This document shows, piece after piece, positions 4,700 through 49,126 of a DNA stretch of 64,000 nucleotides. The first letter of the stretch is position 1, and every line of letters starts with the position of its first letter. The notes below the pieces were generated by a model that was not told the origin of the DNA, made no database searches, and saw nothing but the letters and a program-made list of their open reading frames with translations. The stretch lies in the IMG/VR virus record IMGVR_UViG_3300017917_001996, positions 1 to 64,000 of that record. One strand, given 5' to 3'. Made by a program: the position numbers and the translations under genes.

Positions 4700-4770
4700 T
4701 TGTTCTCTCCACGGTGTATACAAATACTTACGTTTGTCTACACATCTGTTTAACATACCATGGTACGCCT

Positions 4771-4787
4771 TAGACATGAGTCTAGGT
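4771..4787. promoter_or_regulatory. Palindromic candidate operator TAGAC-N4-GTCTA(GGT), with further copies at 5125-5141 and 3966-3979
   Basis: Three copies flank the luxR gene, all intergenic or at gene ends. Confidence 0.5.
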
Positions 4788-9807: not shown

Positions 9808-9898
9808 TCCAATAGCAGAAAAAATTAAAGAGGAAACACAAAATAAAGTAAGAGCATCAAGTAATAGCTCGGGCCCTAAAAAGAAACCTAAGGGGTAA
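9740..9898 (+). CDS. Small basic protein overlapping the csgG 3' end
   Basis: AAGGAG RBS before ATG 9740; fills the gap to 9904. Confidence 0.5.
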   Translation: MSWYKRTPKLKEPPKHLPHHRNSPIAEKIKEETQNKVRASSNSSGPKKKPKG

Positions 9899-9903
9899 AG
9901 AAA

Positions 9904-10716: not shown

Positions 10717-10727
10717 GAGGGTATACC

Positions 10728-11831
10728 ATGAGGTTACCCCTCTTAGTCGCTGGACTATTCCTTTCAATATCGGCGTGGGCTGGAATAGGCTCTGTTACCG
10801 ATTTAACTGGTGCCGCTCAAATTAAGCGCGGTAAGGAAACTATTACGGTTTCAAAGGGCACCGCTATTGAAATGAATGACAAAGTTGAGACTAAAAACGG
10901 TAAATTAACTATCGTTTTTAAAGACGAAACAAATGTCAAGGTCAGCGAACATAGCAGTTTAGTGATTGACGATTTTGTCTACGATCCTAAAAGCGGCAAA
11001 GGTTCTTTAGCAATGAAAGCAGCCGGCGGTGCTGTGCGTTATACATCTGGCGCACTGGCCAAAGACCCTAAGCAAGTTAAAATAAACACACCTACTGCGG
11101 CTATTGCTGTGCGCGGCACAGATTTTGTTATGGCCGTTAACGAAGTAGGATCTAGCGTCATAGTACTGATGCCCACTTGCGATTGGGAAACTAGTTCGGT
11201 CAAGGGTGTTACCTGCGGTAGCAGTGGACGCATTGATGTTGAAAGTGGAACAAAAACTATTACATTAGATAAGGCATACGAAGCCACGGTAGTTGAAACA
11301 CTCGGAGCTCCACCGAGTCCTCCAATGATTGTTAGTATGAGTCAAGGTAATATAGGAACAAACTTATTAGTCAGCGAACCAAAAACTGCCAGTGGACGAT
11401 CAGTGGTTGCTGCTGCTAGGGCTGCAATGGATAAAACTGACGATAGTAAAAAAGATGATGCAGCCAAAGAAGAACAAAAGGTTGCTAGTAAAAGCACTGA
11501 TGAATCCAACAAACGATCTGCAGGCAGTGAAGACACATCTACAGTTAAAGTTGTTGTTGATACCACAAAGTTAGGTATAGATGTTGGCGATAGTACCAAA
11601 GAAAACCCATATGTACATAAGATATGGAAGGACAAAAGTGAGACGCAACAAATCGGCTGGCAATACGAAAGTTTGAGTCAGAACGGGAACAATTATACAA
11701 ACATTACTCTGCCTTTAGACACTAAGGTTTTGGTTATTGTAACGCAAGACAGAATTACAGATGCTTATAACTTTAACACGCAGAGCACTAAATCCTACGG
11801 ACAAATTGTTATTAATCAAACATACAGATGA
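10728..11831 (+). CDS. FecR-domain periplasmic protein
   Basis: Signal peptide; IEMNDKVET, VKINTPTAAIAVRGTDF. Confidence 0.85.
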   Translation: MRLPLLVAGLFLSISAWAGIGSVTDLTGAAQIKRGKETITVSKGTAIEMNDKVETKNGKLTIVFKDETNVKVSEHSSLVIDDFVYDPKSGKGSLAMKAAGGAVRYTSGALAKDPKQVKINTPTAAIAVRGTDFVMAVNEVGSSVIVLMPTCDWETSSVKGVTCGSSGRIDVESGTKTITLDKAYEATVVETLGAPPSPPMIVSMSQGNIGTNLLVSEPKTASGRSVVAAARAAMDKTDDSKKDDAAKEEQKVASKSTDESNKRSAGSEDTSTVKVVVDTTKLGIDVGDSTKENPYVHKIWKDKSETQQIGWQYESLSQNGNNYTNITLPLDTKVLVIVTQDRITDAYNFNTQSTKSYGQIVINQTYR

Positions 11832-13384
11832 TAAAAATATTATTTTCATTGTTATTATTGTTTAGCGGTATCGCCCATTCACAGAACATAGGGTTCGAAT
11901 CCGGTAATCTTTCAAACTGGACCACTTCGGGAACAGATGCAACAGTTAGCACCGGACTAAACAATGCCTCCTACGGTGGTGGTCTAACATGGACCATTAA
12001 GCCATATGGAACATACATGGCTCAGCTATATCCTAGCGGCAGCGTACAGTTCGACGGCGCTACCAGTAGCCTAGGTCTTACTAGCGCAGACAATACTGCC
12101 ATTAGAAATTTCATGACTGCCAACGCAGGTGGCGGCAGCCCTACTCCAACAAATGCAACCTGGATCAAAAGAACTGTAACGTTACAGGCAGGAACTACCT
12201 ACAGTTTTGCTTGGAACTATCTGTCTACAGATTATACACCATTTAACGACGGTTCAATGATCACCTTGGTACACACCACAGATGCCACCAAGATACCAAC
12301 ATTAAACAATGAGCAGAAAAGATATGCCTTACTAGGATTTACTAACCCTGGCACAGGAAACTATTCCACAGGCAGCTATGGTAGCACCGGTTGGCAGTTA
12401 GCAGTGTTTACTGTGCCAGTAACCGGCGACTACGTACTTGGATTTGCTACTTTTAACCTAGGCGATACTGCTCTAAGCCCTATGTTGTTCATTGATGAAC
12501 TACAAGGTGTTACAGAATTAAACGGACAGACTTTTGCTCCTATCGCTCCTAACGCAGGTAGTAGCGCACCAGTCACCGGAGGTGGCAGTAGCGAACCTAC
12601 GTACACATCTGACATAACTCCAGCACAAACATTGATTCTCAACAATGCAAGAACTAGACAAAATGCTATCACTTCAGGTAACAGAATTGACTTGTACAGC
12701 GATGGTTCTGGCAACAGCGTTACTATAGAGCAAGTAGGAAGTTATAACAGAATAAAAGGCCTTGGTACTGCACAAAATGCACACGTAGCAGGCTTTGGTA
12801 CCGCTGTAGACATCAAACAAGGCGAAGTTGGTGCTACCAGGAATCTAATAGAATTGTATGTACAAGGTAATGGCAACAACGTAACTTTAAGTCAAGCCCG
12901 AAATACTTCAACAGGTCTGGTCGATGGTGCAGAAAGTGGAGGGCATTATATGGGGTTGTCTCTAACTGGTGACATCAACTCAATAACCATTCGCCAGGGT
13001 AACGACGGTGGCAGTAACAGCGGTCACTTTACCTTACAAACTATCACAGGCAATTTTAACAACAGCACATTAAATCAAAGTAACAACGGCGAAAAACAAG
13101 CATTTATTAGTATAGACGGTAGCAGTAACAACAGCACCGTAATACAAAGTGGTACTGGTAATCATTATTTAGATTTAACCCTGACAGGAAACGGTAATAG
13201 TGCCAGTGTTACACAAAAAGATTCGGGTAGCCATAAGGCCACAATCAACTTATCTAATGTAGGTGGGCCAAGTTCGGCAACCGTAGTACAACAAGGTAGC
13301 ACCAATCAAGTCTACAATATTAGTCAACAATGTGCTACACTATCAGGGTGTTCTGTTAGTGTTACTCAAGGAACCGGGCCATGA
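11828..13384 (+). CDS. Secreted protein with an N-terminal beta-sandwich-like domain and C-terminal curlin repeats
   Basis: Signal peptide; GFESGNLSNW; many QxGxxN/H repeats in the C-terminal half. Confidence 0.8.
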   Translation: MIKILFSLLLLFSGIAHSQNIGFESGNLSNWTTSGTDATVSTGLNNASYGGGLTWTIKPYGTYMAQLYPSGSVQFDGATSSLGLTSADNTAIRNFMTANAGGGSPTPTNATWIKRTVTLQAGTTYSFAWNYLSTDYTPFNDGSMITLVHTTDATKIPTLNNEQKRYALLGFTNPGTGNYSTGSYGSTGWQLAVFTVPVTGDYVLGFATFNLGDTALSPMLFIDELQGVTELNGQTFAPIAPNAGSSAPVTGGGSSEPTYTSDITPAQTLILNNARTRQNAITSGNRIDLYSDGSGNSVTIEQVGSYNRIKGLGTAQNAHVAGFGTAVDIKQGEVGATRNLIELYVQGNGNNVTLSQARNTSTGLVDGAESGGHYMGLSLTGDINSITIRQGNDGGSNSGHFTLQTITGNFNNSTLNQSNNGEKQAFISIDGSSNNSTVIQSGTGNHYLDLTLTGNGNSASVTQKDSGSHKATINLSNVGGPSSATVVQQGSTNQVYNISQQCATLSGCSVSVTQGTGP

Positions 13385-13946: not shown

Positions 13947-16007
13947 ATGAAAAAAATCTTGCTAAATCCGTGGACAGCATTAGTTACCCTAATTGTTGTT
14001 GCACTAATTCGTTTCTTTGATCCTGCATTTGTTGAATCGGTAAGACTACGTTATTTTGACCAGCTCGTTGTAGGACAACCTGCTACGGAAATTCCTGTAG
14101 ACGTCGTTAACATTGACGAAGCCACCTTAGACAAATACGGACAGTTTCCTTTTCCTCGGGACATATACGCAAAAATAATACAGGATTTATACAAACGCAA
14201 TGCTGGCTTGGTTGTGTTTAACGTAATGATGCCTGAAGCAGATCGTTTTAAACAAGATCCTGTACTGGCACAAACACTAAATCAATATCCAGTTGTTTTA
14301 CCTAAGTTAGCACATACCAAGCAAAAGAATAAAGACCTAGGTAGTGCAGTACAATTATTAGGACAAGATCCCAGTGGGCGCATAGTAGAGTACCCTGGGC
14401 TAATCAACAACGTTCCTGCACTCGAAGAGATTGCTGCCGGAGTCGGTATCGTAAACACATTCCCAGAAATCGACGGCGTTCTACGTCGTATGCCATTAGT
14501 TGTTATGACCGGTAACGGTAATGTACATCCTGCTATCGCCCTTGAAGCATTGCGAGTGGCAGCAGGTGATGATAAGGTGCAGGTTAAGATCGGGGATGTT
14601 GGTGTCGAAGCTTTACGTGTTCCAAAATTTGGACGCCTTGACACAGATAACCTAAGTCGCATCTGGATTGATTGGAGTAAAAAGCCTGCTGAATACAGTC
14701 TAATGAATTTACCTGCAAGTTTTGATAACAAGATTGTTATTGTTGGACTAAGCGCACAAGGACTAGTAAATCCGATTGCTACTGCTCGCGGCGAAGTTTG
14801 GCCTCATAACATGCAAGCCAGCGTTATGGGTACACTGTTAACCAACACCAACATACAAAGACCAGGTTATGCCGACAACTTAGAACTAGCGTCAATTGTA
14901 ATTGCTGGTATTATTTTAATCTTTTTAATGAGGTGGACTTATGTTGGTATCGCTGCCACTGTGGTTACGATTGGTGGTGTTATTGCTGGTAGCATGTATG
15001 CTTACAGTAATTACTTATTCTTATTCGATAGCACTGCCTTTGCAGTTGGCGTGGGCCTGGTCGCTCTGCACGCCTACATGGTAAAGTTTGTTAGTGAGTT
15101 CTTACAGAAGCAACAGATTAGAAAACAATTCCAAAGCTATCTAAGTCCTGACTTGGTTGCTAAACTAATCAAAGATCCTAGCCTATTAAAACTAGGCGGC
15201 GAAGAAAAAGAATTAAGTATCATGTTCACAGACGTTCGTGGCTTTACCAGCATCAGCGAACACTACGGTAAAGACGTACAGGGTCTAACAAGCATCATGA
15301 ACAGATACATGACTGCTATGACTCGTACCATTTTAGAAACAGGCGGTACACTAGACAAGTATATCGGTGATGCACAGATGGCTTTCTGGAACGCACCATT
15401 GGATGAAACAAAGCACTGTAAAGATGCTGTTGAAGCAGCATTACAAATGTTAGGAAGTTTAGATGGATTTAATAAGAGCATTAGTGATGAAGGTGTTCCT
15501 CCCTTTGGGATGGGCATTGGTATTAATACCGGCGTTGTTGTTGTTGGGAATATGGGCAGCGAGCAACGTTTTGATTATACTTGCCTCGGCGATGCTGTCA
15601 ATCTCGCTTCGAGGCTTGAAGGCCAAAGCAAGAACTATGGCGTACTCATTGTCTTGGGACCGATCACAGCAGAAAGACTAGGCGACGAATACTTTACCCT
15701 CGAACTCGACTGTATTGCTGTTAAGGGTAAGAAAGATGGTGTAAACATTTTTACAGTATTCTACAACCCAGATAACGAAGTTGAAATGGTTAAATGGAAG
15801 ACTGCCAGAGAATTACACGACTTAATGTTAGCGCACTATCGCCGTCAAGAATGGGATAAAGCCGTTGCTCTGTGCAATGAGTTAAAAGGTGAATTCAATG
15901 GTGGCATGGACCACTATTACGAGCTATGGCTAGAAAGAATCGAGGGGATGCAAAATGCAGGTTTACCGGCTGATTGGGATGGAATTTTTAGGGCGCAATC
16001 GAAGTAA
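13947..16007 (+). CDS. CHASE2-domain class III adenylate cyclase
   Basis: CHASE2 (VNIDEATLDKYGQFPFPR, DGVLRRMPL), 3 TM helices, FTDVRGFT, DKYIGDA, DYTCLGDAVNLASRLEG; the K and D/T residues fit ATP specificity. Confidence 0.93.
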   Translation: MKKILLNPWTALVTLIVVALIRFFDPAFVESVRLRYFDQLVVGQPATEIPVDVVNIDEATLDKYGQFPFPRDIYAKIIQDLYKRNAGLVVFNVMMPEADRFKQDPVLAQTLNQYPVVLPKLAHTKQKNKDLGSAVQLLGQDPSGRIVEYPGLINNVPALEEIAAGVGIVNTFPEIDGVLRRMPLVVMTGNGNVHPAIALEALRVAAGDDKVQVKIGDVGVEALRVPKFGRLDTDNLSRIWIDWSKKPAEYSLMNLPASFDNKIVIVGLSAQGLVNPIATARGEVWPHNMQASVMGTLLTNTNIQRPGYADNLELASIVIAGIILIFLMRWTYVGIAATVVTIGGVIAGSMYAYSNYLFLFDSTAFAVGVGLVALHAYMVKFVSEFLQKQQIRKQFQSYLSPDLVAKLIKDPSLLKLGGEEKELSIMFTDVRGFTSISEHYGKDVQGLTSIMNRYMTAMTRTILETGGTLDKYIGDAQMAFWNAPLDETKHCKDAVEAALQMLGSLDGFNKSISDEGVPPFGMGIGINTGVVVVGNMGSEQRFDYTCLGDAVNLASRLEGQSKNYGVLIVLGPITAERLGDEYFTLELDCIAVKGKKDGVNIFTVFYNPDNEVEMVKWKTARELHDLMLAHYRRQEWDKAVALCNELKGEFNGGMDHYYELWLERIEGMQNAGLPADWDGIFRAQSK

Positions 16008-36839: not shown

Positions 36840-36884
36840 TTGACAATCCACAAAAGGTATAGTATTATTAGTGCTATACCTTTT
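36840..36884 (+). promoter_or_regulatory. Sigma70-like promoter overlapped by an inverted repeat
   Basis: TTGACA-N17-TATTAT; AAAAGGTATAG/CTATACCTTTT stem. Confidence 0.7.
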
Positions 36885-36903
36885 CTCTTTTGTAAATACA
36901 ATA

Positions 36904-37737
36904 ATGAAAGACTATTTTAATACCTTAGGAGTCAACGCTAACGCCAGCGACGACGAGATTAAAAAAGCATACAAACGATTAGCCATGAAACACCACCCAG
37001 ACCGTGGAGGTGATCAAGCTAAGTTTCAGGAAATCCAAGAAGCATACGATGTGCTGAGCACACCACAACGTCGTGCACAATGGGAACAAGAACGCCAATT
37101 TGGTCAAGGCGGACCCGGTGGGTTCCAATTTAACTTTGGTTTTGGTCCTCAAGGGTTTGAAGATATATTTCAACATTTCCAGGGCGGGCATCCTTTTAGT
37201 TTTAGACAACCTGCAAAAAACAGAGACCTGCGTGTTAGGTTGGAAATTGATCTTCAAGCAACACTAGAAAAACAAAGCCAACAAATTAACATCAGACAAA
37301 ACAATGGTGTTAACAAAACAGTTGACATAGAGATTCCACGTGGTGTAATGACAGGTATGCAAATGCGTTGTCAAGGGATCGGTGATCACTCAAATACTAA
37401 TTTACCGCCGGGTGATCTTTATGTTGAATTTTTTGTTCGACCGCACCCTGATTTCCAAGTCAACGGAATACATTTGACTAGGTCATTAAAAATAAACTGT
37501 CTAGATGCAATTCTAGGTACAACAGAAAACATCAACGGACTTGACGGTAAAGTTTTTGAAATCAATATTCCGCCCGGTACACAGCCAAATACTAAATTCA
37601 GACTTGCTTCGCAAGGCCTATGGGATGTCAATCAACCAATCAGAGGAGATTTATTTGTAGAAATAATATTACAAGTACCAACTGCACTAACTGCAGAACA
37701 ACTTAATAAATTGCAACAACTTGTTAATAGGAATTAA
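36904..37737 (+). CDS. DnaJ/CbpA-like co-chaperone without a Zn finger
   Basis: J-domain with HPD, G/F region, C-terminal domain. Confidence 0.92.
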   Translation: MKDYFNTLGVNANASDDEIKKAYKRLAMKHHPDRGGDQAKFQEIQEAYDVLSTPQRRAQWEQERQFGQGGPGGFQFNFGFGPQGFEDIFQHFQGGHPFSFRQPAKNRDLRVRLEIDLQATLEKQSQQINIRQNNGVNKTVDIEIPRGVMTGMQMRCQGIGDHSNTNLPPGDLYVEFFVRPHPDFQVNGIHLTRSLKINCLDAILGTTENINGLDGKVFEINIPPGTQPNTKFRLASQGLWDVNQPIRGDLFVEIILQVPTALTAEQLNKLQQLVNRN

Positions 37738-37739
37738 AA

Positions 37740-40061
37740 ATGTCTCTTATGCAACCAAATAACGAAATCGAAGAAATCATCCTCAAGGCAGGCGAAGCTG
37801 CTAGAAGATATGGCCATGAATATGTAACTCTAGAACACCTGAGCTGGGCCATTTTTCAATATTCACCATTTAACGAAATTTTAAAGAAGCTAAAATTCGA
37901 TGTCGACGGTTTGGTTAACGATATTGAAGAATACTTGGTGAACCAAGATACAATTGGTGCCAATGATCAAAATGCTCCTCGCAAAACACAAACACTAGAG
38001 CGTGTGTTTAATCGAGCCCTTACGCAAGTACTTTTTCACGGACACAATCGTATTAAGATTGTAGACTTGCTATTGAGCATCAGTTTAGAAACCAACAGCT
38101 ATGCTTCATATTTCATGATCAAATACGGCCTCGACCGTAACACCATTATTAGTCTTTATAAGAAATTCAACACCGAAGCAGATTCTAAGGCACTAAATTC
38201 CAATGGATCCAGTTCTGCCGACGACATCCTTGATGAGTTTTGCACTAATTTAAATGCTCTAGCCGAGAAAGGTGATATTGATCCAATTATCGGAAGAGAA
38301 ATAGAACTCGACGATATGACCCAAATCCTAGCTAAACGTAACAAAGCTAACGTATTGCTAGTTGGCGACCCTGGTGTTGGTAAAACAATGCTAGCAGAAG
38401 GATTAGCCAAGAATATTGTTGAAGGCAACGTTCCAGACTACCTAAAAGGATTTACTGTTTATAACTTAGATATTGGCACATTGTTGGCTGGTAGTAAATA
38501 TCGAGGCGAGTTCGAAGAAAAGTTCCAACAAGTTATCAAAGCTCTTGTTACTAAAACAAAAACAATTTTGTTTATTGACGAAGCGCACCAAATGCGTGGC
38601 GCCGGTTCTAATAGTTCCAGTAGTGTTGACTTTAGCAACATGATTAAGCCTGCACTAACTAAAGGTCGTATTAAAGTTATCGCTAGTACAACCTGGGAAG
38701 AATATACACAGAGCTTTGAAAAGGATCGAGCACTAATGCGCCGATTCCAACGTCTAGTTGTTGATGAACCTAGTCCTGCAGAAGCTAAATTAATTCTTAT
38801 GGGAATTAAGAAGCAATTCGAAAAGTTCCATGGTGCTTACATCACCGACGAAGCTATTGAAGCTGCTGTAGACTACAGTGTTAAGTATCAAACAGATAAG
38901 AAGTTGCCCGACAAGGCCATTGATCTTATTGACTCTGCGTGTGCTAAACAAAAGATTTTCTACAATAAAGATCCTGAATCGGGTTCTGAATTTATCTTGT
39001 CCAAGAGTCATATTATTGAAATTCTAAGCAAGGCAACAAAGATTCCAGTGGACCAAATTGGCGCAAGTTCTGAATCCAATAACTTAGTTAACTTAGAAGA
39101 AACTATTCAGCAAAACTTGTACGGTCAAGAATCTGCAATCAAGACAGTACTAGAGAAGATTTATGTCAGCAAGGCAGGCATGAAGCCTCTAAACAAGCCT
39201 ATTGGTAGTTTCTTGTTCTTGGGTCCAACTGGTACAGGTAAGACTGAACTAGCCAAGCTGATTGCAGAAAATTTAAACATGAAGCTACTGCGCTATGATA
39301 TGAGTGAGTACCAAGAGAAGCACAGTCTTGCTAAACTTATTGGTGCGCCTCCAGGCTATGTTGGCTATGATGACGGTAACCTAGGTGGTGGTTTGTTAAT
39401 CAGCGCAATCGAACAAAATCCTAACGCAATCATTTTGTTTGACGAAGTTGAAAAGGCACACCCAGATGTTAGTAACCTCTTGCTACAGTTTATGGACGAG
39501 GGTTTTATTACATCTAGCAATGGCAAAAAAGCCGATGCACGTAATACTATCTTAGTTATGACCAGTAACCTAGGTGCTGCCGACAGCGAACGTAACACAA
39601 TTGGTTTTGGTGAAAGTCTACAGAGGACGGGCGAAGACGATAAGGCAGTTAAAGATTTCTTTAAACCAGAATTCCGAAATCGTATTGACGCAATTTGTAA
39701 GTTCAATTACCTAGATCAAATGAGTATGCGTAAGATTGTGGCTAAGTTCATTAACGAACTCAACGAATTGTTGTCCGATCGTCGTATTAAGATTAGACTC
39801 ACAGAAGCTGCTGTAGATCATTTAATTAATAAAGGCTTCGACAAAAAGATGGGCGCACGACCGCTGGGCCGTACAATTAACGATTTAATTAAAGTGCCAA
39901 TTAGTAAGAAAATCTTATTCGAGAATATGATGAATGGAAGTATTATTACTGTTGATTATGCCAACGAATCGTTGACATTTAATATTGAGACCAGTAATAT
40001 GTTCATTACATTAGAAGGAACTTCAACAGTTGACAAAGACGGCTACATTCGATTGGAATAA
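37740..40061 (+). CDS. clpA: ClpA-like AAA+ chaperone
   Basis: Clp N-domain, GDPGVGKT, GPTGTGKTE, LIGAPPGYVG; no ClpB middle domain. Confidence 0.92.
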   Translation: MSLMQPNNEIEEIILKAGEAARRYGHEYVTLEHLSWAIFQYSPFNEILKKLKFDVDGLVNDIEEYLVNQDTIGANDQNAPRKTQTLERVFNRALTQVLFHGHNRIKIVDLLLSISLETNSYASYFMIKYGLDRNTIISLYKKFNTEADSKALNSNGSSSADDILDEFCTNLNALAEKGDIDPIIGREIELDDMTQILAKRNKANVLLVGDPGVGKTMLAEGLAKNIVEGNVPDYLKGFTVYNLDIGTLLAGSKYRGEFEEKFQQVIKALVTKTKTILFIDEAHQMRGAGSNSSSSVDFSNMIKPALTKGRIKVIASTTWEEYTQSFEKDRALMRRFQRLVVDEPSPAEAKLILMGIKKQFEKFHGAYITDEAIEAAVDYSVKYQTDKKLPDKAIDLIDSACAKQKIFYNKDPESGSEFILSKSHIIEILSKATKIPVDQIGASSESNNLVNLEETIQQNLYGQESAIKTVLEKIYVSKAGMKPLNKPIGSFLFLGPTGTGKTELAKLIAENLNMKLLRYDMSEYQEKHSLAKLIGAPPGYVGYDDGNLGGGLLISAIEQNPNAIILFDEVEKAHPDVSNLLLQFMDEGFITSSNGKKADARNTILVMTSNLGAADSERNTIGFGESLQRTGEDDKAVKDFFKPEFRNRIDAICKFNYLDQMSMRKIVAKFINELNELLSDRRIKIRLTEAAVDHLINKGFDKKMGARPLGRTINDLIKVPISKKILFENMMNGSIITVDYANESLTFNIETSNMFITLEGTSTVDKDGYIRLE

Positions 40062-41741: not shown

Positions 41742-43667
41742 ATGTTTCTTAACGACTTATACGAAAACGTTGAAACCATGGACACTTTAGTGGTGTACCC
41801 TGGTAGATTCCAACCCTGGCACAGAGGACACCACGAAGTTTACAATTATTTGGTTAAAAACTTTGGACGTGATAGGGTATTCATTGCAACCAGCAACAAA
41901 GTAGAACCTCCTCGCAGTCCATTTAGTTTTGCAGAAAAAGTGCAGTTTATGCACTTTACTGGCATACCCAATGATGTAATTGTTGAGGCTAGGGATCCTT
42001 ATAAAGCAGTAGAACTAACTAGCAAATACAATCCTAAAACTACAAGATTAATTTTTGCTGTTAGCCAAAAGGACATGGACGAAGATCCACGGTTTACGTT
42101 TGGTTACAAAAAAGATGGTTCTCCAACTTACCTCCAAGATATGCCCAAGAATGCATATCAAATGCAGAGCCTAGAGTCACATGCATATATAATGGTTGTG
42201 CCCACATTTCCGTTTAAGATATTAGGGAAAGATGTTGAAGGCGCAACAGACATTCGTAGAATGTTTTCAGAAGGCGACGAGCAAACACAACAACAAATCA
42301 TTATAGATTTATTTGGTAGATACAGTCCCGATATCCATGCTTTAATGAAGAACAAGATTACATTAAATGAATCGATGCAATCCGACAAGTCGCAGGATAT
42401 GTTGATGCGAATTAAAAAGCAAATCGACCAGAATCGTGCAGCAACTGCTGCCCAACGTCAAGCAGAGTTAGCCCAATGGGAACAAGATTTTAAGCAAAAC
42501 ATGGCGTCTAGGTACAGAACAGTAAGGCAGCCCGAGTTAACACAAACTCCAACACAAATTGCTGCACCTATAGAAAAACATTCTGTATTACAGACTAGAA
42601 TGGCTAACCTTAATAAGGCTATCGAAAAAACAAATATCCTCAATGCACTAATCTCCAAGGCAGAGCAAAGAGGTTTAATGACCCCAGGATTACGTGCAGA
42701 CACAGATATTTCTTTGTACGTTAGTAATGCTGCTCAAGACAACTATGTAGGACTAAACCAAAAGTTAGATAAGTCAATTGAATTAGTTAAACAAGCGTGG
42801 AATGCTAAAAAATTAGCCTACTCTAAGCCAAAGAGCAACATGCGCGAACAGGAATTAGATGAAGGCCTTGGTGATTACTTTAATAAATTAAAATCATTTG
42901 TGCTAAAAGTCTTAGGCAAAAAAGTTAGTAAGACACCACAGGATGCAGCCGCATTCCAACGAATGATGAGCAAAATTACTGCTCCAGTTGATACTGCACA
43001 ATACGGAAGACTTTGGCAGGAATATAAATCTAATTCACAATATAATGTTCCTATTCCGAGGCCCGAAGATCTTGATAATCCTCAAGTAATGTATCTATGG
43101 TCTAACAGTATAGTCCAGTTTGTCATGAACAAGTTTCCGGACACACCAGTAGACGTACTTAAACAAACAGTAATCGGATTGTCTATGTTTGCAGTTAATG
43201 AATATAGAGCAAAATACCGTAACAACGACATCAGCGAGGAAAACGATTCCTATAGACCACCGGGCGCTAGTCGATCACAAACTGCGGCAGTAATGAACAA
43301 AATGCACCCTGCTGAAAAATTTGTTTGGAAACGACCAAACCAAATTGGAGGTAGTTTTAGCGAGCAAGAGCTATTGGCAAAAGGATTTAAAAAATCACAA
43401 TATAATAGCTGGGGCGGTACACCCACAATGTGGCGGAACCTACTAGGTGTAAAAGAAACCGTACTAAATCAACCTACACCTACACTTAGAGATTTAATTA
43501 AAAAATACCCTAATGTGCCCTTAGAAAAACTGCGCCACGAACTTCAAATAGGTGTGCGTGTAGAATATGAGCATACTAAAAATGCTCGGACTGCCACAGA
43601 AATAGCACTAGATCATTTAAATGAAAGGCCAGACTACTATACAGTCTTAGCCAAAGTAGGCCTATAA
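41742..43667 (+). CDS. Multidomain protein: HIGH-motif cytidyltransferase-like domain, further modules, and a C-terminal DUF5661-like domain
   Basis: PGRFQPWHRGH; GVRVEYEH...IALDHLNERPDYY; start moved to 41742 (after the terminator and promoter). Confidence 0.75.
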   Translation: MFLNDLYENVETMDTLVVYPGRFQPWHRGHHEVYNYLVKNFGRDRVFIATSNKVEPPRSPFSFAEKVQFMHFTGIPNDVIVEARDPYKAVELTSKYNPKTTRLIFAVSQKDMDEDPRFTFGYKKDGSPTYLQDMPKNAYQMQSLESHAYIMVVPTFPFKILGKDVEGATDIRRMFSEGDEQTQQQIIIDLFGRYSPDIHALMKNKITLNESMQSDKSQDMLMRIKKQIDQNRAATAAQRQAELAQWEQDFKQNMASRYRTVRQPELTQTPTQIAAPIEKHSVLQTRMANLNKAIEKTNILNALISKAEQRGLMTPGLRADTDISLYVSNAAQDNYVGLNQKLDKSIELVKQAWNAKKLAYSKPKSNMREQELDEGLGDYFNKLKSFVLKVLGKKVSKTPQDAAAFQRMMSKITAPVDTAQYGRLWQEYKSNSQYNVPIPRPEDLDNPQVMYLWSNSIVQFVMNKFPDTPVDVLKQTVIGLSMFAVNEYRAKYRNNDISEENDSYRPPGASRSQTAAVMNKMHPAEKFVWKRPNQIGGSFSEQELLAKGFKKSQYNSWGGTPTMWRNLLGVKETVLNQPTPTLRDLIKKYPNVPLEKLRHELQIGVRVEYEHTKNARTATEIALDHLNERPDYYTVLAKVGL

Positions 43668-43705
43668 TTTAAAATTAATAAATACTAATTATATCGGATT
43701 ACACC

Positions 43706-44110
43706 ATGAAACCAACAGATTTTATCCCAGAAAAGCACCATATTGGCCAAGCTGCTATGGATATGCATGTCGATCATGAAATACAAATGGCTAGAGAAAA
43801 CTGCTACAATGCAGCTACTAACGCCATTGAATTACATCGTATGCTTAAAAAGGTAAGCGAACAAGAGGGACTAGACGCATGGGCTAGTGAAAAACTCAGT
43901 CTAGCCAACGATTATCTGCGTACAGTAAAAGAGTGGCTAGAGTATGAAATCATGAGTAAGATGGAGACGCAAATGGCCGAAGAAACTTTTGATGCACAAG
44001 TTGTCGAATTTGCTTCAGCCGGTGCAGGTGCAGTTGGAGGTGTTGCCACAGCGCCAGGCACCGCCGGAGAACTGTTTGGTGGTAAAAAGAAAAAGGCAAA
44101 AACAAAATGA
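43706..44110 (+). CDS. Probable internal virion protein
   Basis: TAAATA upstream; MKPTDFIPE leader. Confidence 0.6.
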   Translation: MKPTDFIPEKHHIGQAAMDMHVDHEIQMARENCYNAATNAIELHRMLKKVSEQEGLDAWASEKLSLANDYLRTVKEWLEYEIMSKMETQMAEETFDAQVVEFASAGAGAVGGVATAPGTAGELFGGKKKKAKTK

Positions 44111-44544
44111 AATCTACTAGCTTTTTATACGAAGGCGCACGCCTAGTTGCACAACAAAATTTCGGAAATCGTGCTGTTAAAATCTACCGCGATGTAGAAT
44201 GGAACGAGTTTATTGTTAAATTTTTTCTAAACGGTGAACATCAAATTGAAGCCGATTATCATACTAACGAAAAAGATGATGCGCTTTCAACCGCACAAGG
44301 TTGGTTAAGAAAAGGTTCTGATGTTAGCGGTCCGGCTACTGAATCAGAGTTAGAAGAAGTTGTAATTCCTCCAACACCCGGGGGTACTGCTGCTGCACCT
44401 ACAGCCAATGCTGCACCAACATCGCAGGGTGCAGTACAATCTAAACCAATAACACCACAAGGAGTTGATGCACTGGCACAGATTATAAAGAGTGCTGGTT
44501 TAAATCCTAGTCAGTTAAACACTGTTCTTTCCAAAGCAAAATAA
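44107..44544 (+). CDS. Probable internal virion protein
   Basis: MKSTSFLYEG leader. Confidence 0.6.
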   Translation: MKSTSFLYEGARLVAQQNFGNRAVKIYRDVEWNEFIVKFFLNGEHQIEADYHTNEKDDALSTAQGWLRKGSDVSGPATESELEEVVIPPTPGGTAAAPTANAAPTSQGAVQSKPITPQGVDALAQIIKSAGLNPSQLNTVLSKAK

Positions 44545-44555
44545 TAAGGCTTACT

Positions 44556-47500
44556 ATGTTTGTATTTGATTTATTTAATAAAAAAGTTTCTGAAGCCGAG
44601 CGACGTCCTGAGCCTGAACAAGAAATCATTGATGCCACACGTCGTGCCAGACAACAACAAGAACGCGAACCAGCTGGCAGTGAAAAGATTGACGCAATGT
44701 TGGCGCAACAACATGCACAGCGCCAGGAATACGAAAGAACTGGTAATTTCTGGCTAAAGACCAAAGTTGAACAACGTCATATCCAAGGTCCTTTTGTAGG
44801 CAAGGCTGCTGCTAATACTGCGGCTTTGGAATTATTAAAACAGGCGCCAGAGCTAAAAGGAAACCTATTAATTACTGCCTACGGCCCAGGAGAACAGCAA
44901 AATGAAAATATCGACGAAGGCAGTTTAGTTGCCTTTGAAAAAGATCCTTTTGAGCGTTGGAAAAAAACTGTAGCTATGGTCAATCCTAACATAGGAAAAA
45001 ATTTGACTTTCGTTTCTAAAGAGAATGGAAGAAAAGTTGTTGCTATGGATCGTTTTTCAAGAATTGTCTACGGCGAATTTAATACTCAAACCATGAAGGG
45101 TCAAGTCTTTGATGTTACCGACGGCGACCTAGCCGAGGAAAAAGTTCGCTTAGATCCTAGCTGCTGGAAGAACAAAAAGATCGGCAATCCCAAGACCAAG
45201 ATGAAGGGCGGTGTTAGGGTTAATAATTGTGTGCCTGCAGAAAGTGTAACAGAAGGTTTTGACAATTATCTAGATAACGCTATATACGATCTAGGTATGA
45301 GCAAACCAGGTATGGATCAAGAAACTTTCCTTGACGATCTTTATTCCTACTTAGATGCTGAATATGGTAAAAATGTAGCAGATCGAGTATTCTATCGCGA
45401 AGACGAAAATGAATATGCTGAGTGGTACGACAAATATCAAAGTCTAGATGAAGGTGTAGCGGAAGGATTGGGCAAAGACCTAAAGCGTTTGGCTACAGGA
45501 AAAGATGTAAAAAGTCGTTCTGGACAGGAGATTGCTAAAGCACAGCAAGCCAGTATGACAGGTGATAACAAAACCGCACACAAGCACTTCAAGCGTTATG
45601 ACAAGTTAGACAAGTTGGCAAATAAAGAGCAAGGTGTGGCTGAAGGCTATCCTAAACATCAAGACCTAAGTGCTATACCTACAGAAAAATTGATGGCATT
45701 TCTTGAAAAACATGCAGGTGGAGGTGTCCCAACATTTGGTCAAGGGGCACAAGTTCGCCGTGTTTATGCAGAACTAAAGCGTAGACAGCAAGGTGTGGCG
45801 GAAGGTGGCTATCAAGATGATAGTAAAGAGAGTGAAGAAAATTTAAGATACGCCCGCACTCGCAATCCTGTTGCCGATGTGATTCGCAAGAAATTAAATC
45901 CTAATCAGAAACCAGAAAAAGAGCAAGGTGTGGCGGAAGGCTTGAGCAAGCGTGACCAACAGGATGTGGCTGCTATCCGTGCTGCTATTGCGAGATTAGA
46001 GGCACAACTAAATCACCCTAATGCTGATCGTGATGCTATCCTGCAAAGTATTGCCCACGAGAAGAAGCGTCTAGCATTGTACGGACAGGATGTGGTGGAA
46101 GGCTCTGATCCCTTTACAGATGGATACAATGCTTGGCAGCAGTACCTAAATGGTAAAACAAATCGTCGCCCTACAAATCCTTACCCAGCCGGACATGGTA
46201 TGGGTCAATGGGAAGCAGGAGCGGCCAAGGCTGCCGAAGGACACGACTTTGGCCAAGATGATAGTAGGTATGATGTGGCTGAAGACCAAATCAACGAATC
46301 TCCTACTATTGATTTCATCAGAGGGTTGATCTCTGAATTCAATAAACAAATGAGCGGTAGCCCATACTATCCAATGGATTATAAAAATCCCGGCATGAGA
46401 ATGTGGACTCGCGGTGATGGATCTAAATATAAAGATCCTGGATATATTTTTATTGACCGTGATTTGAAGCCAGAAGATATACCCAAGTGGCAAAAAGCAG
46501 GTGCAGTGGAAAAGTTTTGGAAGTTCTTAGAGTCCAAAGGTGCTCGTAAGATAGGTGATGTTTCTGGCGAGTTTGGCTCAGACCCACACAGTCCTGCTAT
46601 AGTATTGAACAAGTTGATTTTTGTATTCAACGGTCGTAGCATTGCCTGGGGGTCAACCAGCAGACTAAAGAACTCCAATGTGTGGCGTCAGAAACAGCAA
46701 GGTGTGGCGGAAGCAGGCGTGAAACAATTGCCTACTCAAGGTGCAGATTATAGCAAATACGATACTGACCATTTGAAAATGATGTTGCGACCAGGTATCT
46801 TACATCGCAATGAAGCAAGATTCAAATCACTAATTCGTAAAGAATTACAGAAGCGTGAACAGCAAAGTCAACAAGGTGTGGCGGAAGTCTCGGAACAAAA
46901 ATATGTCGTTACTATTGACGCCATCGACCATGGCGTATTAGGAGCAATAACGGTTACTGCTAGTAGCCCAGAAGAAGCAAAAAGAAAAGTTGTTGCTGGT
47001 GTTAAGTCATCAATGTTAAAGCGCGGATATGAATTGATGGTACGCAGTGTGAGTGTAAAACCAGTGGAAGATGTAGCGGAAGAAGACAAAAGTCAAGTAG
47101 AAAAACTAAGAATGCAAGATTATTTAGATCGTGCTGATCGTTTACACGACGAAATAATGACCCTACAACGCTCCGGAAATCTTGAGGCACTAAAGCATTT
47201 AAAACAACAATATTATGAACTAGAAGCACAAGCAAGAAAGGGATTAGTTCCAGAAGAATCTGTTACTGAAGCAGGTACCCCAGCAGATCAACCACGTATT
47301 CGTAAGTATTCTAAGATACGTGCAGATGGATCCAAAGCCGAACGATACGAAGTACTTGACTACCAAGGTCGTCGAGTTGCCGGTCAAGGATCAGAAGGCT
47401 TTGACGATCTCAAAAATGCCAAAGAGTTCTTCAGAAGAAACTACAGTCGTTTAATTAACCCAATCGACGAGGAAGTCTTAAAGACTAAAGAAAAGAAAAA

Positions 47501-47615
47501 AGAACGAGATGATCCTGCACATCCTGGTAAGAAGATGTTAGAGTCTAAGAAGCGTTATTGGTGTTCAACCGAGAAACGTTGGAAAGAGATGGAAGAAAAC
47601 AAGGAGAGCAACTGA
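44556..47615 (+). CDS. Modular polyprotein with QGVAE(G) linkers (probable processed internal head protein)
   Basis: Nine xxVxE-type linkers (mostly QGVAE) separate unrelated 45-143 aa modules. Confidence 0.8.
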   Translation: MFVFDLFNKKVSEAERRPEPEQEIIDATRRARQQQEREPAGSEKIDAMLAQQHAQRQEYERTGNFWLKTKVEQRHIQGPFVGKAAANTAALELLKQAPELKGNLLITAYGPGEQQNENIDEGSLVAFEKDPFERWKKTVAMVNPNIGKNLTFVSKENGRKVVAMDRFSRIVYGEFNTQTMKGQVFDVTDGDLAEEKVRLDPSCWKNKKIGNPKTKMKGGVRVNNCVPAESVTEGFDNYLDNAIYDLGMSKPGMDQETFLDDLYSYLDAEYGKNVADRVFYREDENEYAEWYDKYQSLDEGVAEGLGKDLKRLATGKDVKSRSGQEIAKAQQASMTGDNKTAHKHFKRYDKLDKLANKEQGVAEGYPKHQDLSAIPTEKLMAFLEKHAGGGVPTFGQGAQVRRVYAELKRRQQGVAEGGYQDDSKESEENLRYARTRNPVADVIRKKLNPNQKPEKEQGVAEGLSKRDQQDVAAIRAAIARLEAQLNHPNADRDAILQSIAHEKKRLALYGQDVVEGSDPFTDGYNAWQQYLNGKTNRRPTNPYPAGHGMGQWEAGAAKAAEGHDFGQDDSRYDVAEDQINESPTIDFIRGLISEFNKQMSGSPYYPMDYKNPGMRMWTRGDGSKYKDPGYIFIDRDLKPEDIPKWQKAGAVEKFWKFLESKGARKIGDVSGEFGSDPHSPAIVLNKLIFVFNGRSIAWGSTSRLKNSNVWRQKQQGVAEAGVKQLPTQGADYSKYDTDHLKMMLRPGILHRNEARFKSLIRKELQKREQQSQQGVAEVSEQKYVVTIDAIDHGVLGAITVTASSPEEAKRKVVAGVKSSMLKRGYELMVRSVSVKPVEDVAEEDKSQVEKLRMQDYLDRADRLHDEIMTLQRSGNLEALKHLKQQYYELEAQARKGLVPEESVTEAGTPADQPRIRKYSKIRADGSKAERYEVLDYQGRRVAGQGSEGFDDLKNAKEFFRRNYSRLINPIDEEVLKTKEKKKERDDPAHPGKKMLESKKRYWCSTEKRWKEMEENKESN
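45450..47083 (+). repeat. Dispersed in-frame 16-17 bp repeat CAAGGTGTGGCGGAAG
   Basis: Exact at 45789, 45924, 46698 and 46872; variants at 45450, 45630, 46086, 46269 and 47067. Confidence 0.9.
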
Positions 47616-48049
47616 TGGAAGAATTACAAAAGGCAGCAAAGATTGCCTTTGCCAGCGAATTTAGTTTTTATTTAAAGGCACATCAGTTTCACTGGAATGT
47701 TGAAGGCATCAACTTCAAACAACTGCACGACTTGTTTGGCGGCATCTACGAAGAAGTATATGATAGCATTGACGACTTTGCTGAAAAGATTCGTAGCCTT
47801 GGTACCTACATGCCGGGCAGCTACACTCGTTTTAGTATGCTAAGTAAAATAGAAGACGAAACTAATATCCTTGACAGTCAAGGTATGTTAGCTGAGTTAG
47901 CCGGCGACAACGAAAAAATGATCAAAATTTTTAAAATGGTTTTTGACCTGAGCGAAGCTGCTGGCGAACACGGTTTTAGCGATTTCGTTGCTGGCCGCAT
48001 GGATGCACATCGCAAACATGGTTGGATGTTAAAAGCTAGTTTAAAATGA
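47615..48049 (+). CDS. dps: Dps / ferritin-like DNA protection protein
   Basis: KAHQFHWNVEG..F..LH...DDFAEKIR...KHGWML; TGATG coupling at 47615. Confidence 0.92.
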   Translation: MEELQKAAKIAFASEFSFYLKAHQFHWNVEGINFKQLHDLFGGIYEEVYDSIDDFAEKIRSLGTYMPGSYTRFSMLSKIEDETNILDSQGMLAELAGDNEKMIKIFKMVFDLSEAAGEHGFSDFVAGRMDAHRKHGWMLKASLK

Positions 48050-48441
48050 GAGCTAAAGAGTTTTTATACGAAGGTCGCGAGCATTACCCGCAGGTTCATG
48101 CTGCAATTAGGGACTTACTTCCTATCGCAATGGAGGAACTAGGCCTTAAAGATCTTCCTAAGATTAAAATTGAAAAATCTTTAAACTTTAGCGGGCAACC
48201 TAGCTTTGGTGCTTACACAGGCGCAGATATTCAACTAGGTATTAACGGACGTCATCCAGTAGATGTATGCCGCACTCTTGCACATGAACTAGTCCACTAC
48301 AAACAAAAACTCGATGATAAACTAAACGCAGAATCCGGTACAACTGGTAGCCCAGAAGAAAACGAAGCCAACAGCGTTGCCGGTGTTATCATGCGTAAAT
48401 TTAGCAAACAATTTCCACGTTACATAAACAATGAGAGTTAA
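48046..48441 (+). CDS. Zn metallopeptidase-like protein (HExxH)
   Basis: RTLAHELVHYKQ...ENEAN. Confidence 0.75.
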   Translation: MRAKEFLYEGREHYPQVHAAIRDLLPIAMEELGLKDLPKIKIEKSLNFSGQPSFGAYTGADIQLGINGRHPVDVCRTLAHELVHYKQKLDDKLNAESGTTGSPEENEANSVAGVIMRKFSKQFPRYINNES

Positions 48442-49126
48442 AGATTTTAAAAATGAAATCGCCTACCATAGCCAGCTTAACTCTAAAGCCTGGGCAGGTA
48501 CTCAGCTACGCCCAGAAGTTAGATACAAACTTCTACAAGCTGCAAAATTGTTTATAAGTTATCTTGATATCAAAGGTTTTCGTGTTTTGGATGTAGTGTT
48601 AGCTGGAAGTATGGCTAATTACAATTATACTGACTATTCCGATTTTGATGTTCACGTTGTTACTAGATACGCAGACTTACAGTGCGACGACTTAGCCGAA
48701 GCATTCTATCGTGCTAAGAAACAGTTATGGAACGAACAACACGATATAGTTATACGTGGGCACGAAGTAGAACTGTATGTAGAAGATGTTGAGCAACCTC
48801 CGGTTAGTGCAGGTGTTTACAGTATTCTAGATGACAAGTGGTTAACAGAACCCAAATACAATCCACCAGAAATTAACCGTCCTGCAATTAAGCTAAAGGT
48901 ACAGGACTTAATTAAACAAATCAACGACACATTATCAACTGCCGACGATCCCGCAGACATTCGTCGCATTGCTGATAAAATCGGCGACATGAGAAAATCT
49001 GGATTAGCCCGCGGCGGCGAATTCAGTGTAGAAAACTTAGCATTCAAGGTTCTAAGGAACCAAGGATATATCGATCGTTTGTACAAAGAGTTCAATCGTC
49101 AACAAGACATTGACCTTAGTATCTAA
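48431..49126 (+). CDS. Pol-beta-like nucleotidyltransferase
   Basis: LAGSMANYNYTDYSDFDVHVV (GS...DxD), VELYVE. Confidence 0.8.
   Translation: MRVKDFKNEIAYHSQLNSKAWAGTQLRPEVRYKLLQAAKLFISYLDIKGFRVLDVVLAGSMANYNYTDYSDFDVHVVTRYADLQCDDLAEAFYRAKKQLWNEQHDIVIRGHEVELYVEDVEQPPVSAGVYSILDDKWLTEPKYNPPEINRPAIKLKVQDLIKQINDTLSTADDPADIRRIADKIGDMRKSGLARGGEFSVENLAFKVLRNQGYIDRLYKEFNRQQDIDLSI

Follow-up and report, generated by a model that had tools for sequence, protein, structure and literature searches.

The internal proteins of bacteriophage T4 are ejected into the host, and one of them, IPI, is an anti-restriction protein (PMC9026906). They reach the capsid by way of leaders of 10-19 residues, and the prohead protease gp21 cleaves after L/I-X-E; a strict requirement for Glu at P1 is the signature of the S77 prohead proteases (PMC9026906). 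In the phages phiKZ and SPN3US, a gp21-related protease recognises a short motif that ends in Glu and cuts behind it, in some proteins more than once (PMC9026906, PMC5694885, PMC10052503). Motif-mediated shuffling of phage genes has been described as well. PeSLs are intergenic composites of a promoter and a stem-loop, ~100 bp long (PMC2839356), and both they and the conserved elements of the T-even internal protein (IP) loci are short repeats that flank ORFan cassettes and act as recombination linkers in hyperplastic regions (PMC2839356, PMC4122927).

Here we describe a gene that has features of both kinds of system; a comparable arrangement was not found in the literature searched. The DNA analysed (the window) is the first 64 kb of a 250-kb pond-metagenome contig, IMGVR_UViG_3300017917_001996, which belongs to an uncultivated jumbo phage of the T4 superfamily; the G+C content of the window is ~41%. 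We consider it probable, with some reserve, that the gene encodes a capsid-targeted cargo polyprotein that is cut at its joints by a predicted S77 protease, and that the joint doubles as a stretch of microhomology for the exchange of cassettes.

Architecture of the polyprotein gene

The polyprotein ORF (44556..47615, on the plus strand, as are all features given below) starts with ATG and encodes 1019 amino acids, with a mass of 113 kDa at full length, in 14 modules (M1 to M14). The earlier note had counted a joint core four times in exact and five times in degenerate form, at spacings that are multiples of 3, and the recount confirmed these copies at the same positions. The 16-mer CAAGGTGTGGCGGAAG occurs exactly at 45789, 45924, 46698 and 46872 and with one to three mismatches at 45450, 45630, 46086 and 47067, and the copy at 46269, with four mismatches, reads YDVAED in frame. 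All nine copies share frame 0 of the ORF, with joint-to-joint spacings of 180, 159, 135, 162, 183, 429, 174 and 195 nt. By chance 0.20 matches would be expected, and none of 100 shuffles reached nine; an extra three-mismatch match at 46676, close to the 46698 copy, is put down to chance.

With an arrow marking the predicted cut, the joints read EGVAE↓G (45450..45465, two mismatches to the 16-mer; foreign contigs diverge at 45465), QGVAE↓G (45630..45645, one mismatch), QGVAE↓G (45789..45804, exact), QGVAE↓G (45924..45939, exact), QDVVE↓G (46086..46101, three mismatches), YDVAE↓D (46269..46284, four mismatches), QGVAE↓A (46698..46713, exact), QGVAE↓V (46872..46887, exact) and EDVAE↓E (47067..47082, three mismatches). 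A repeat search recovered the same joint family and added ESVTE↓G at the M3/M4 boundary (45240..45255) as a degenerate copy. Together with the degenerate junctions NIDE↓G between M1 and M2 (44907..44918) and DLAE↓E between M2 and M3 (45126..45137), and the degenerate joint ESVTE↓A between M13 and M14 (47256..47271), the architecture comprises nine in-frame joints and four looser junctions.

The modules had appeared mutually unrelated on first reading, and the searches bear this out. Iterated profile (HMM) searches with each of M1 to M14 never matched another module of the same protein, and TRF found no tandem array in the gene, which rules out a tandem duplication or a repeat-domain protein; among 281 proteins, just two cases of related modules in the same protein were seen. 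A CRISPR array, which has non-coding repeats of ~28-37 nt and spacers of uniform length, is likewise ruled out by the 16-17-nt repeat and the 135-429-nt units, all in one reading frame.

In the AlphaFold model of the whole protein (pTM 0.37), confident islands alternate with segments of pLDDT <50, and those segments hold every joint. The best-conserved cassette, M10 (46284..46712, 143 aa), is predicted to be a folded alpha/beta domain with disordered ends (pLDDT 79.5). A Foldseek search of the PDB with the M10 model found no relative (best E = 0.09, TM at most 0.23), and in the ESM Atlas M10 matched unnamed viral clusters and nothing else. Like the T4 internal proteins, most of the modules are basic (median pI 9.0).

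Pfam and PHROG searches with the polyprotein ORF matched no family, and the same family searches with 88 relatives returned DUFs and unnamed PHROGs and nothing else. Neither the ORF nor a second polyprotein has a cultured relative among 50,697 phage records (megablast and tblastn). In the syntenic region of phage Phosso, collagen-like tail-fibre genes take the place of the polyprotein. The T4 late-promoter motif TATAAATA shows no enrichment across the window and is missing upstream of the polyprotein locus.

Leaders, prohead protease and predicted release of modules

The polyprotein starts with a leader, MFVFDLFNKKVSE (44556..44594), which ends in V-S-E and resembles the capsid targeting sequence (CTS) of T4. 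Relatives start with MFVDDLFNKKTLAE or MFVDDLFNKKTLTE, and in relatives with single modules a leader such as MKTLRDYINLIE..QGVAE↓G is placed before the module; the N-termini of T4 ipII and ipIII read MKTYQEFIAE↓A. Four or five genes neighbouring the ORF begin with M[KR]xx[DE]F[IL]xE. On the upstream side are an NMNAT-like cytidylyltransferase joined to a middle region and DUF5661 (41742..43667, with its start at 41742 or 41778 and a possible leader MFLNDLYE) and two small proteins with CTS-like leaders, MKPTDFIPE (43706..44110) and MKSTSFLYE↓G (44107..44544, also repeat D4 in the repeat search). On the downstream side are a small HExxH protein with the CTS-like leader MRAKEFLYE↓G (48046..48441), which may be more cargo or may compete with the S77 protease as the candidate processing enzyme, and a nucleotidyltransferase-like protein with the leader MRVKDFKNE (48431..49126). 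The combined leader pattern is present in 40 of 124 polyproteins and in 7 of 160 controls; three of these seven are the ORF's own neighbours in the window, and two are T4 gp21 and gp22. The likeness to the T4 CTS is one of pattern, and homology or a shared function would be putative.

A candidate for the processing enzyme is found in related phages. An S77 prohead protease and a Gp23-type capsid protein share two contigs, L043 and L027, with a QGVAE protein. The protease matches Peptidase_S77 with E = 3e-26 and is 35% identical to T4 gp21, and the closest phages by the head proteins are Phosso and PA5oct; for the window's DNA polymerase the closest phage is likewise Phosso. The N-terminus of the capsid protein contains four [LIV]-x-E sites that are kept across 77 relatives; in IMG/VR the clade of this protein counts >600 relatives. 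The protease and capsid genes of the source phage would lie outside the 64-kb window, and its contig is not among the 80 loci listed in the capsid-protein search. The QGVAE gene adjoins the capsid gene in L043, L027 and L063/L261. Among 53 further head loci just two have this arrangement, and so it is given little weight as a general sign of a head location.

Twin-arginine signal peptides inside such polyproteins (n=8) all lie 2-3 residues past a junction Glu. Because internal signals of this type could work only if the preceding bond were cut, they argue for cutting at the joints. Against a gp21-type site, V-A-E↓G at the joint is a loose match to the L/I-X-E rule, with Val at P3 where the T4 rule has Leu or Ile. 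The protease site proposed in the earlier note remains a predicted one, and it is favoured by the CTS-like leaders, the S77 protease on a contig with QGVAE and the twin-arginine signals directly after the joint.

In the reading we favour, a leader of the T4 CTS type would bring the entire chain into the assembling prohead core. A gp21-type serine protease (MEROPS/Pfam S77) would then cut each (Q/E/K)-G-V-A-E↓G joint, as well as the looser x-V/L/I-x-E junctions, and free ~14 small, mostly basic proteins of 4-16 kDa, which would stay with the DNA, be ejected into the next host and act there separately. Since the chain would be cut after its import under one leader, a single leader could load many cargos.

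Alternatively, cutting could take place in the cytoplasm, by the HExxH protein encoded 430 nt downstream of the polyprotein or by a host enzyme, with the products acting unpackaged in the producing cell; we regard this as unlikely. The polyprotein locus is surrounded by genes for chaperones and replication (DnaJ, ClpB-like, Dps-like, PolB) and not by head genes, which counts against packaging and would suit action in the producing cell, and modules with Tat signals would serve that cell equally well. The HExxH protein has a weak match to Peptidase_M91 (E = 0.02), and in several related loci a homologue lies no more than 10 kb from the polyprotein, directly downstream of it in L006 and fused into a multi-domain neighbour in L004. 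However, the HExxH protein has the CTS-like leader of its neighbours and is one domain among others in fusions, and for these reasons it looks like cargo. Further points against cytoplasmic cutting are the strict P1 Glu, which marks the S77 prohead proteases (PMC9026906), and the leader pattern, which also catches T4 prohead core proteins.

Conservation and shuffling at the joint

Across relatives, the joint has the consensus (Q/E/K)GVAE↓G, encoded by ~17 nt, CAAGGTGTGGCGGAAGG, and in >1000 mosaic proteins from uncultivated phages it connects modules of hundreds of kinds. The 1057 proteins collected (50% clustering) have single modules in common, placed differently from protein to protein, and no 5-mers are more frequent in them than QGVAE and GVAEG. 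Of 162 occurrences of the exact 17-mer in IMG/VR, 161 are in frame; in cellular genomes it gave single, mixed-frame background matches only and no clue to the host. A set of 519 internal modules falls into 305 families, and the left neighbours of each family are nearly as varied as the family has members. The orthologue comparison called for in the earlier note gave the outcome expected of a shuffled gene: syntenic loci and relatives contain different module sets, with the order reversed or modules replaced, not an identical order.

The joint is conserved at silent sites. Its Val codon is GTG in 89% of joints, compared with 19% elsewhere in these genes, and its Ala codon is GCG in 93% compared with 7%, in agreement with the fixed wobble positions described in the earlier note. 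Information content drops to about zero beyond roughly 17 nt, silent-site identity is higher in joints than in modules whatever the level of divergence, and GVAE peptides outside joints use ordinary codons. We regard this as a rare and clean case in which the identity of DNA within a coding region is subject to selection or concerted evolution. An RNA element was dropped as an explanation, since Rfam gave no match in the window and no conserved flank could pair with the joint.

Conserved codons would also be expected if the protein stayed uncut, as beads on a string, with the joint as a spacer whose fixed codons (rare GTG-GCG and the Shine-Dalgarno-like AAGGUG) slow the ribosome while modules fold. 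In keeping with this, the joints are disordered spacers between predicted folded islands, two of the five joint codons are rare in these genes and nucleotide conservation is limited to the joint. We nevertheless find it very improbable: a spacer makes no sense in single-module genes with a short leader ending in QGVAE, twin-arginine signal peptides directly follow internal joints, pausing needs no single exact 17-mer over hundreds of contexts, and the joint peptide is itself invariant and agrees with a known protease rule.

Shared DNA ends at the joint, in line with the earlier proposal that modules are exchanged there. Among DNA matches of at least 95% identity, 56% of the ends are no more than 3 nt from a joint, compared with 5% at random, and contigs from four other freshwater or wastewater runs part from the window exactly at joint edges. 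Homology crosses intact joints at a rate of 0.33 and decayed ones at 0.35-0.38 (0.56 for control positions within modules), so that no excess of breaks at intact joints was seen, and breakage shows no visible dependence on present-day nucleotide identity. Seventeen bases are also short for homologous recombination, which counts against the joint as a crossover site, and selection for recombinants with whole domains could be an alternative source of the breakpoints.

According to our preferred reading, the near-identical joint of ~17 nt would serve as an in-frame microhomology patch for the recombination and replication machinery of the phage. Co-infecting relatives would exchange, insert, delete and reorder modules at joints, giving rise to a combinatorial repertoire of cargos.

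A dedicated site-specific recombinase or homing endonuclease that recognises the 17-mer and moves the cassettes, making a true in-frame integron, is in our view highly doubtful: silent-site conservation beyond the apparent need of passive homology and breakage that does not scale with residual identity would fit it, as would the gene for a SegE-like GIY-YIG endonuclease that immediately precedes the QGVAE gene in L043 and L027, but the endonuclease association is confined to a few contigs, a Pfam scan of 47 ORFs of the window, with the small ones covered in part, gave no integrase or recombinase, the 17-mer was found to have neither dyad symmetry, conserved flanks nor a stem-loop partner, and in T4-type phages short homology suffices for efficient recombination (PMC2839356).

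Comparison with known systems

The joint array shares features with several known systems, all of which differ from it in some respect. In integrons, the IntI integrase, a tyrosine recombinase, acts on structured attC sites with imperfect inverted repeats, and the cassettes are separate genes. Integrons and the joint array both line up unrelated cassettes between copies of a recurring site, at which cassettes are gained, lost and reordered; here, the modules are in one ORF, no IntI gene was found among the window ORFs scanned, and no attC-like structure was found. The term 'integron-like' in the earlier note is thus apt only as an analogy, and the interpretation given there is, overall, partly supported: the parts accessible to computation came out as foreseen, and none of the three refuting outcomes named in the note was seen. 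In a bolder reading, the joint would be a selected genetic device with a dual use, a 'protein-level integron': tentatively, and at less than even odds, the same five codons would be both a release site and an in-frame crossover point, by which freshwater and wastewater jumbo phages trade injected effectors, with one leader loading the set. It is possible, with a similar degree of doubt, that the traded effectors include modules re-exported to the periplasm by the host Tat system and that the clade is an abundant one.

Polyvalent proteins of phages and conjugative elements are said to bundle unrelated, conflict-related domains (Iyer, Burroughs, Anand, de Souza and Aravind 2017). They were reportedly predicted to be delivered with DNA and processed by proteases, with the processing ascribed to embedded peptidases; their domains are said to be mostly recognisable enzymes, and they reportedly have no stereotyped linker. 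The fusion neighbours in the window (NMNAT-like, deaminase, HExxH, nucleotidyltransferase and DUF5661) resemble such proteins.

phiKZ and SPN3US are giant phages, too, and pack many proteins (their inner-body and ejection proteins) with the DNA. Those proteins, however, are large and conserved and have propeptides removed, in contrast to arrays of small interchangeable modules with an identical joint, and nucleotide-level conservation of their cleavage sites is not known to have been reported.

The PeSLs and the elements of the T-even IP locus are closest as to shuffling, in that a short repeated motif flanks variable ORFan cassettes, as the joint does here. Whole genes are shuffled by PeSLs, whereas the joint is a 17-nt coding sequence that has no stem-loop, is a peptide signal as well and shuffles modules of proteins. 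If our reading is true, the array would be a counterpart of exon shuffling in viruses of prokaryotes, in which one short sequence ensures joining in frame and, later, separation of the proteins.

As to the cargo, the nearest relatives in kind are the T4 internal proteins (IPI, IPII, IPIII and Alt). They, too, have a short leader (here M-[KR]-x-x-[DE]-F-[IL]-x-E and MKTLRDYINLIE) and are cut after Glu in a hydrophobic-x-Glu motif, which is known for T4 and predicted here; in both cases the products, which are predicted ones here, are small, for the most part basic and very varied, and the locus that encodes them is hypervariable and separate from the head gene cluster. In T4, packaging and cleavage are proven, whereas here they are predicted. 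Each T4 internal protein has a separate gene and its own leader, whereas here ~14 cargos follow one leader in one frame, with a stereotyped internal site between cargos that has Val, not Ile or Leu, at P3.

The joint array would be a variant both of the internal-protein biology of T4 and of modular shuffling mediated by motifs. The hundreds of unannotated module families (305 in a small sample) are candidate injected effectors, some of them with export signals. If the proposed mechanism is true, it would suggest a design rule for the delivery of multiplexed proteins in capsids (leader, cargo, joint, cargo and so on), and the array would be a second, far more compact answer to the problem that T4 solves gene by gene, namely how to load a changeable set of host-takeover or counter-defence proteins into the capsid.

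The polyprotein gene and its setting

The window makes up positions 1-64000 of a 250-kb contig (IMG/VR 3300017917_001996) from a pond metagenome. By its family-B DNA polymerase, the nearest relative is Sinorhizobium phage Phosso (51%), followed by Agrobacterium phage Atu_ph07 (46%), with Vibrio phage 2.275.O and Rak2/121Q-like coliphages as further near relatives; all of these are giant T4-superfamily phages. The encoded collagen-like tail fibres, clamp loader, PhoH, DnaJ, ClpB-like ATPase and Dps-like protein are compatible with a jumbo phage. A conserved gene order (ClpB-like, polyprotein, Dps-like, two small ORFs, PolB) recurs in related contigs with polymerases 58-84% identical, where the polyprotein has just one or two modules in common with that of the window. 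The genes for DnaJ and the ClpB-like double-AAA chaperone are just upstream of the cargo locus (36871-40061), and the start of the Dps/ferritin-like gene (47558-48049) overlaps the polyprotein stop (TAATG). Elsewhere the window encodes AhpC and AhpD-like proteins (6538-7932), a curli-like cluster (8938-13384) of a CsgG channel homologue (E = 1e-48), a FecR-like protein and a Curlin-repeat protein, with a LuxR/GerE regulator nearby (4007-4777, minus strand), a protein that joins a CHASE2 sensor to an adenylate/guanylate cyclase domain (13947-16007; full-length match to the unnamed PHROG phrog_35576, E = 4e-234) and, at the contig end, a papain-family (C1) cysteine protease (473-1228, minus strand).

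The polyprotein is read from one uninterrupted ORF of 1019 aa (44556-47615, plus strand). The 16-mer CAAGGTGTGGCGGAAG, the DNA of the linker peptide or 'joint', occurs exactly at 45789, 45924, 46698 and 46872, with one to three mismatches at 45450, 45630, 46086 and 47067, and with four at 46269, where the same frame reads YDVAED; a repeat search of the window adds ESVTEG at 45240 as a further family member. Expected matches number 0.20, and nine were reached in none of 100 dinucleotide-preserving shuffles. When cuts are placed at the joints and also at the looser junctions NIDE, DLAE and SVTE, the protein divides into 14 modules (39-143 aa), numbered M1 to M14 from the N-terminus. Tandem Repeats Finder detects no tandem array, and iterated profile searches of each module against about 1000 modules of related proteins give no cross-matches among M1-M14. 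The earlier note, which had described an in-frame array of mutually unrelated modules, is thus borne out: every copy is in frame 0, the spacings are as listed there, and the modules are not diverged tandem copies of one another.

Module exchange and silent-site conservation

Scanned in full with HMMER, 1.84 billion cluster representatives yield 1057 proteins at E <= 0.001, each matching one to a few modules only, at widely differing positions. GVAEG and QGVAE are the commonest 5-mers in an unbiased count over the best 150 of these 1057. The exact 17-mer CAAGGTGTGGCGGAAGG is present in at least 120 IMG/VR stretches and, among the IMG/VR matches listed, reads QGVAEG within a long ORF in 161 of 162 occurrences. 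Matches in cellular genomes (596 Gb) are single, fall in mixed frames and hardly ever belong to an ORF with several joints, and their count is about the chance level (roughly 70 by our own estimate).

When 281 of the proteins are split at the joint, 519 internal modules result (median 73 aa), forming 305 families (208 singletons). Related modules are paired within one protein in two cases only, and the number of different left neighbours of each family comes close to its number of members. M10 comes before M1 in the related protein P0005, after M11 in P0007, and before M3 in the related loci L002 and L003; P0002 keeps the ends (M1-M3 and M14) around a different middle. M3 (45138-45254), a 39-aa two-Cys module (..CW..K..G.K.K.G..V.NCVP..), is among the most frequent cassettes: the local set has 67 modules related to it, and it is found at the N-terminus, internally and at the C-terminus. 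Several contigs that otherwise carry different modules share M10 (46284-46712) at 90-97% identity, with invariant TRGDG and WGSxSR motifs; its fold is confidently predicted and no PDB relative was found, and it would be a good first target for functional testing. Neighbouring genes in related loci (L004 1139-3745, L002 6199-8109, L003 6969-8522) are shuffled fusions too, resembling polyvalent proteins, with NMNAT-like, cytidine deaminase, HExxH, nucleotidyltransferase and DUF5661 domains at looser L/V-x-E junctions.

When polyprotein genes from different contigs are compared, DNA matches tend to stop at joints: 30.6% of internal match ends are within 3 nt of one, compared with 4.0% of random positions. 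The figure is 56% (random, 5%) at 95% identity or more and 52% at 85-95%. As an independent check, contigs from four other freshwater and wastewater runs hold pieces 90-99% identical to single window modules and depart from the window sequence precisely at the edges of joints. Similarity to the window gives way to unlike sequence at 45465, 45804/5, 45939-41 and 46713, and begins after unlike sequence at 45631, 45922-5, 46274, 46693-9 and 46869; one foreign piece spans 46274-46713 and another 46698-46887. Whether homology crosses intact joints less often than decayed ones was tested with a negative outcome (0.33 for intact and 0.35-0.38 for decayed joints; control positions inside modules, 0.56).

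Among loci found by protein similarity, the joint Val is GTG in 89% of cases versus 19% elsewhere in the same genes, Ala is GCG in 93% versus 7%, and Gly is GGT in 98% versus 49%; 134 GVAE joints other than the exact seed 17-mer give 83%, 84% and 95%. Information content falls to about zero immediately outside the roughly 17 nt. With amino-acid divergence held equal, shared Gly, Val and Ala residues have the same codon in 64-89% of comparisons at joints versus 35-79% in module interiors. Where a GVAE tetrapeptide occurs in an ordinary protein of these contigs, its codons are ordinary, and in three single-module genes silent sites vary in the leader just upstream and none vary in the joint. Conservation at the nucleotide level is thus genuine and particular to the joint; its cause may be selection or continual copying through recombination.

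The earlier note had also proposed the linker as a possible hinge for swapping cassettes, to be checked by module changes exactly at the 16-mer, and had pointed to its fixed wobble positions, to be checked against codon usage; on each point the relatives agree with it. Because they carry reordered modules, the identical order that it named as counter-evidence is not what is found.

Leaders and predicted cleavage

T4 gp21 cleaves after Glu in L/I-X-E, and T4 internal proteins enter the prohead by N-terminal capsid targeting sequences of 10-19 residues, which gp21 then removes (PMC9026906). In the T4 record, ipII and ipIII start MKTYQEFIAE↓A (the arrow marks the cut, predicted in our proteins). 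The window polyprotein has the leader MFVFDLFNKKVSE↓A, and most polyproteins start with the same type (MKLFDLFE↓G, MKINDVVAE↓S, MKITTLLE↓T, MSNILKGLNE↓G), while single-module genes have a leader such as MKTLRDYINLIESNE directly before QGVAE↓G (L039, L109, L110, P0148, P0032). A combined leader pattern matches 40 of 124 distinct polyprotein N-termini versus 7 of 160 control ORFs; three of those seven are the immediate window neighbours of the polyprotein (43706, 44107, 48046), and two more are T4 gp21 and gp22, prohead core proteins. Neighbour genes (41742-44544, 48046-49126) also start like T4 targeting sequences (MFLNDLYE, MKPTDFIPE, MKSTSFLYE, MRAKEFLYE, MRVKDFKNE), the leaders of 44107 and 48046 being 78% identical in DNA over 32 nt. 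Since such leaders stand on both sides of the polyprotein, the whole 7.4-kb stretch looks, from its sequence, like an internal-protein locus.

Two short contigs with a QGVAE protein (L043, L027) also encode a protease of the gp21-type S77 family (Pfam E = 3e-26; 35% identity with T4 gp21) and a capsid protein of the Gp23 type. Protease and capsid protein have their nearest relatives in Phosso and PA5oct, the group to which the window polymerase points; in Phosso, the two genes that follow the protease gene have similar leaders (MRASELFEF and ..LRKFMNILNE↓S). The capsid-protein N-terminus keeps four [LIV]-x-E sites in 77 relatives, the last at the T4 gp23 cut position. A QGVAE gene adjoins the capsid gene rarely (2 of 53 further head loci). 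In L043 (7870-8592) and L027 (3241-3987), a gene for a SegE-like GIY-YIG homing endonuclease separates the capsid gene from a QGVAE gene, an arrangement rare among related head loci.

A Tat signal works only at a free N-terminus. Eight polyproteins have twin-arginine signal peptides deep inside, RRGFLKG and then an Ala/Gly-rich stretch (L009 about aa 605-640; L068, P0036, P0042, P0067, P0076, P0094, P0119), in all eight cases 2-3 residues past a junction Glu; one member has a Pfam TAT_signal match. Other modules open with a Lys-rich and then an Ala/Gly-rich hydrophobic stretch, like a Sec signal or membrane anchor (L014, L003, L008). From these predicted signals, part of the cargo may be exported again, to the envelope of the host. 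Single-module and polyprotein leaders, co-occurrence of the S77 protease, the capsid sites and the Tat positions together tie the T4 gp21 and targeting rule to the polyproteins. Structure prediction agrees with the joint as a putative protease site: all joints of the window protein are in segments with pLDDT below 50 between confident islands (pTM 0.37), and the M10 model is good with disordered ends.

Proposed mechanism and comparison with known systems

The best-supported reading, which we consider fairly probable, is that the polyprotein is capsid-targeted cargo. One N-terminal leader would load the entire chain into the prohead, the prohead protease would separate the modules at the joints, and the released modules would leave the capsid with the DNA on ejection; identity of the joint DNA would allow in-frame module exchange between relatives. 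Short homology serves T4-type recombination, and ORFans and internal-protein genes are known to be shuffled by way of short conserved motifs (PMC2839356, PMC4122927).

The weak points of the cargo reading are the joint P3, which is Val whereas the T4 rule has Leu or Ile; the negative comparison of intact and decayed joints; the protease, known from L043 and L027 and not from the window's own 64 kb; the location of the polyprotein among replication and chaperone genes; the rarity of QGVAE genes beside the capsid gene; and the length of the joint, 17 bases being short for homologous recombination. Each of three rivals explains less. Processing in the cytoplasm, whether by a host enzyme or by the HExxH protein encoded next to the polyprotein, is unlikely. 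We give still less credence to an uncut protein in which the joint is a spacer whose codons pace translation, and equally little to a dedicated enzyme that recognises the 17-mer.

The literature searched yielded no mention of QGVAE or QGVAEG in a phage context and, on jumbo-phage polyproteins, only the SPN3US and phiKZ protease work. As putative capsid cargo, the modules can be compared with T4 internal proteins, whose basic character they mostly share (median pI 9.0). Targeting leaders, gp21-type processing, hypervariable internal-protein loci and motif-mediated shuffling are already known; what is new is the fusion of many cargos in one reading frame, the stereotyped internal joint, conserved at the nucleotide level, and the scale: module families number in the hundreds, and the uncultivated clade that carries them is abundant, IMG/VR having more than 600 MCP relatives.
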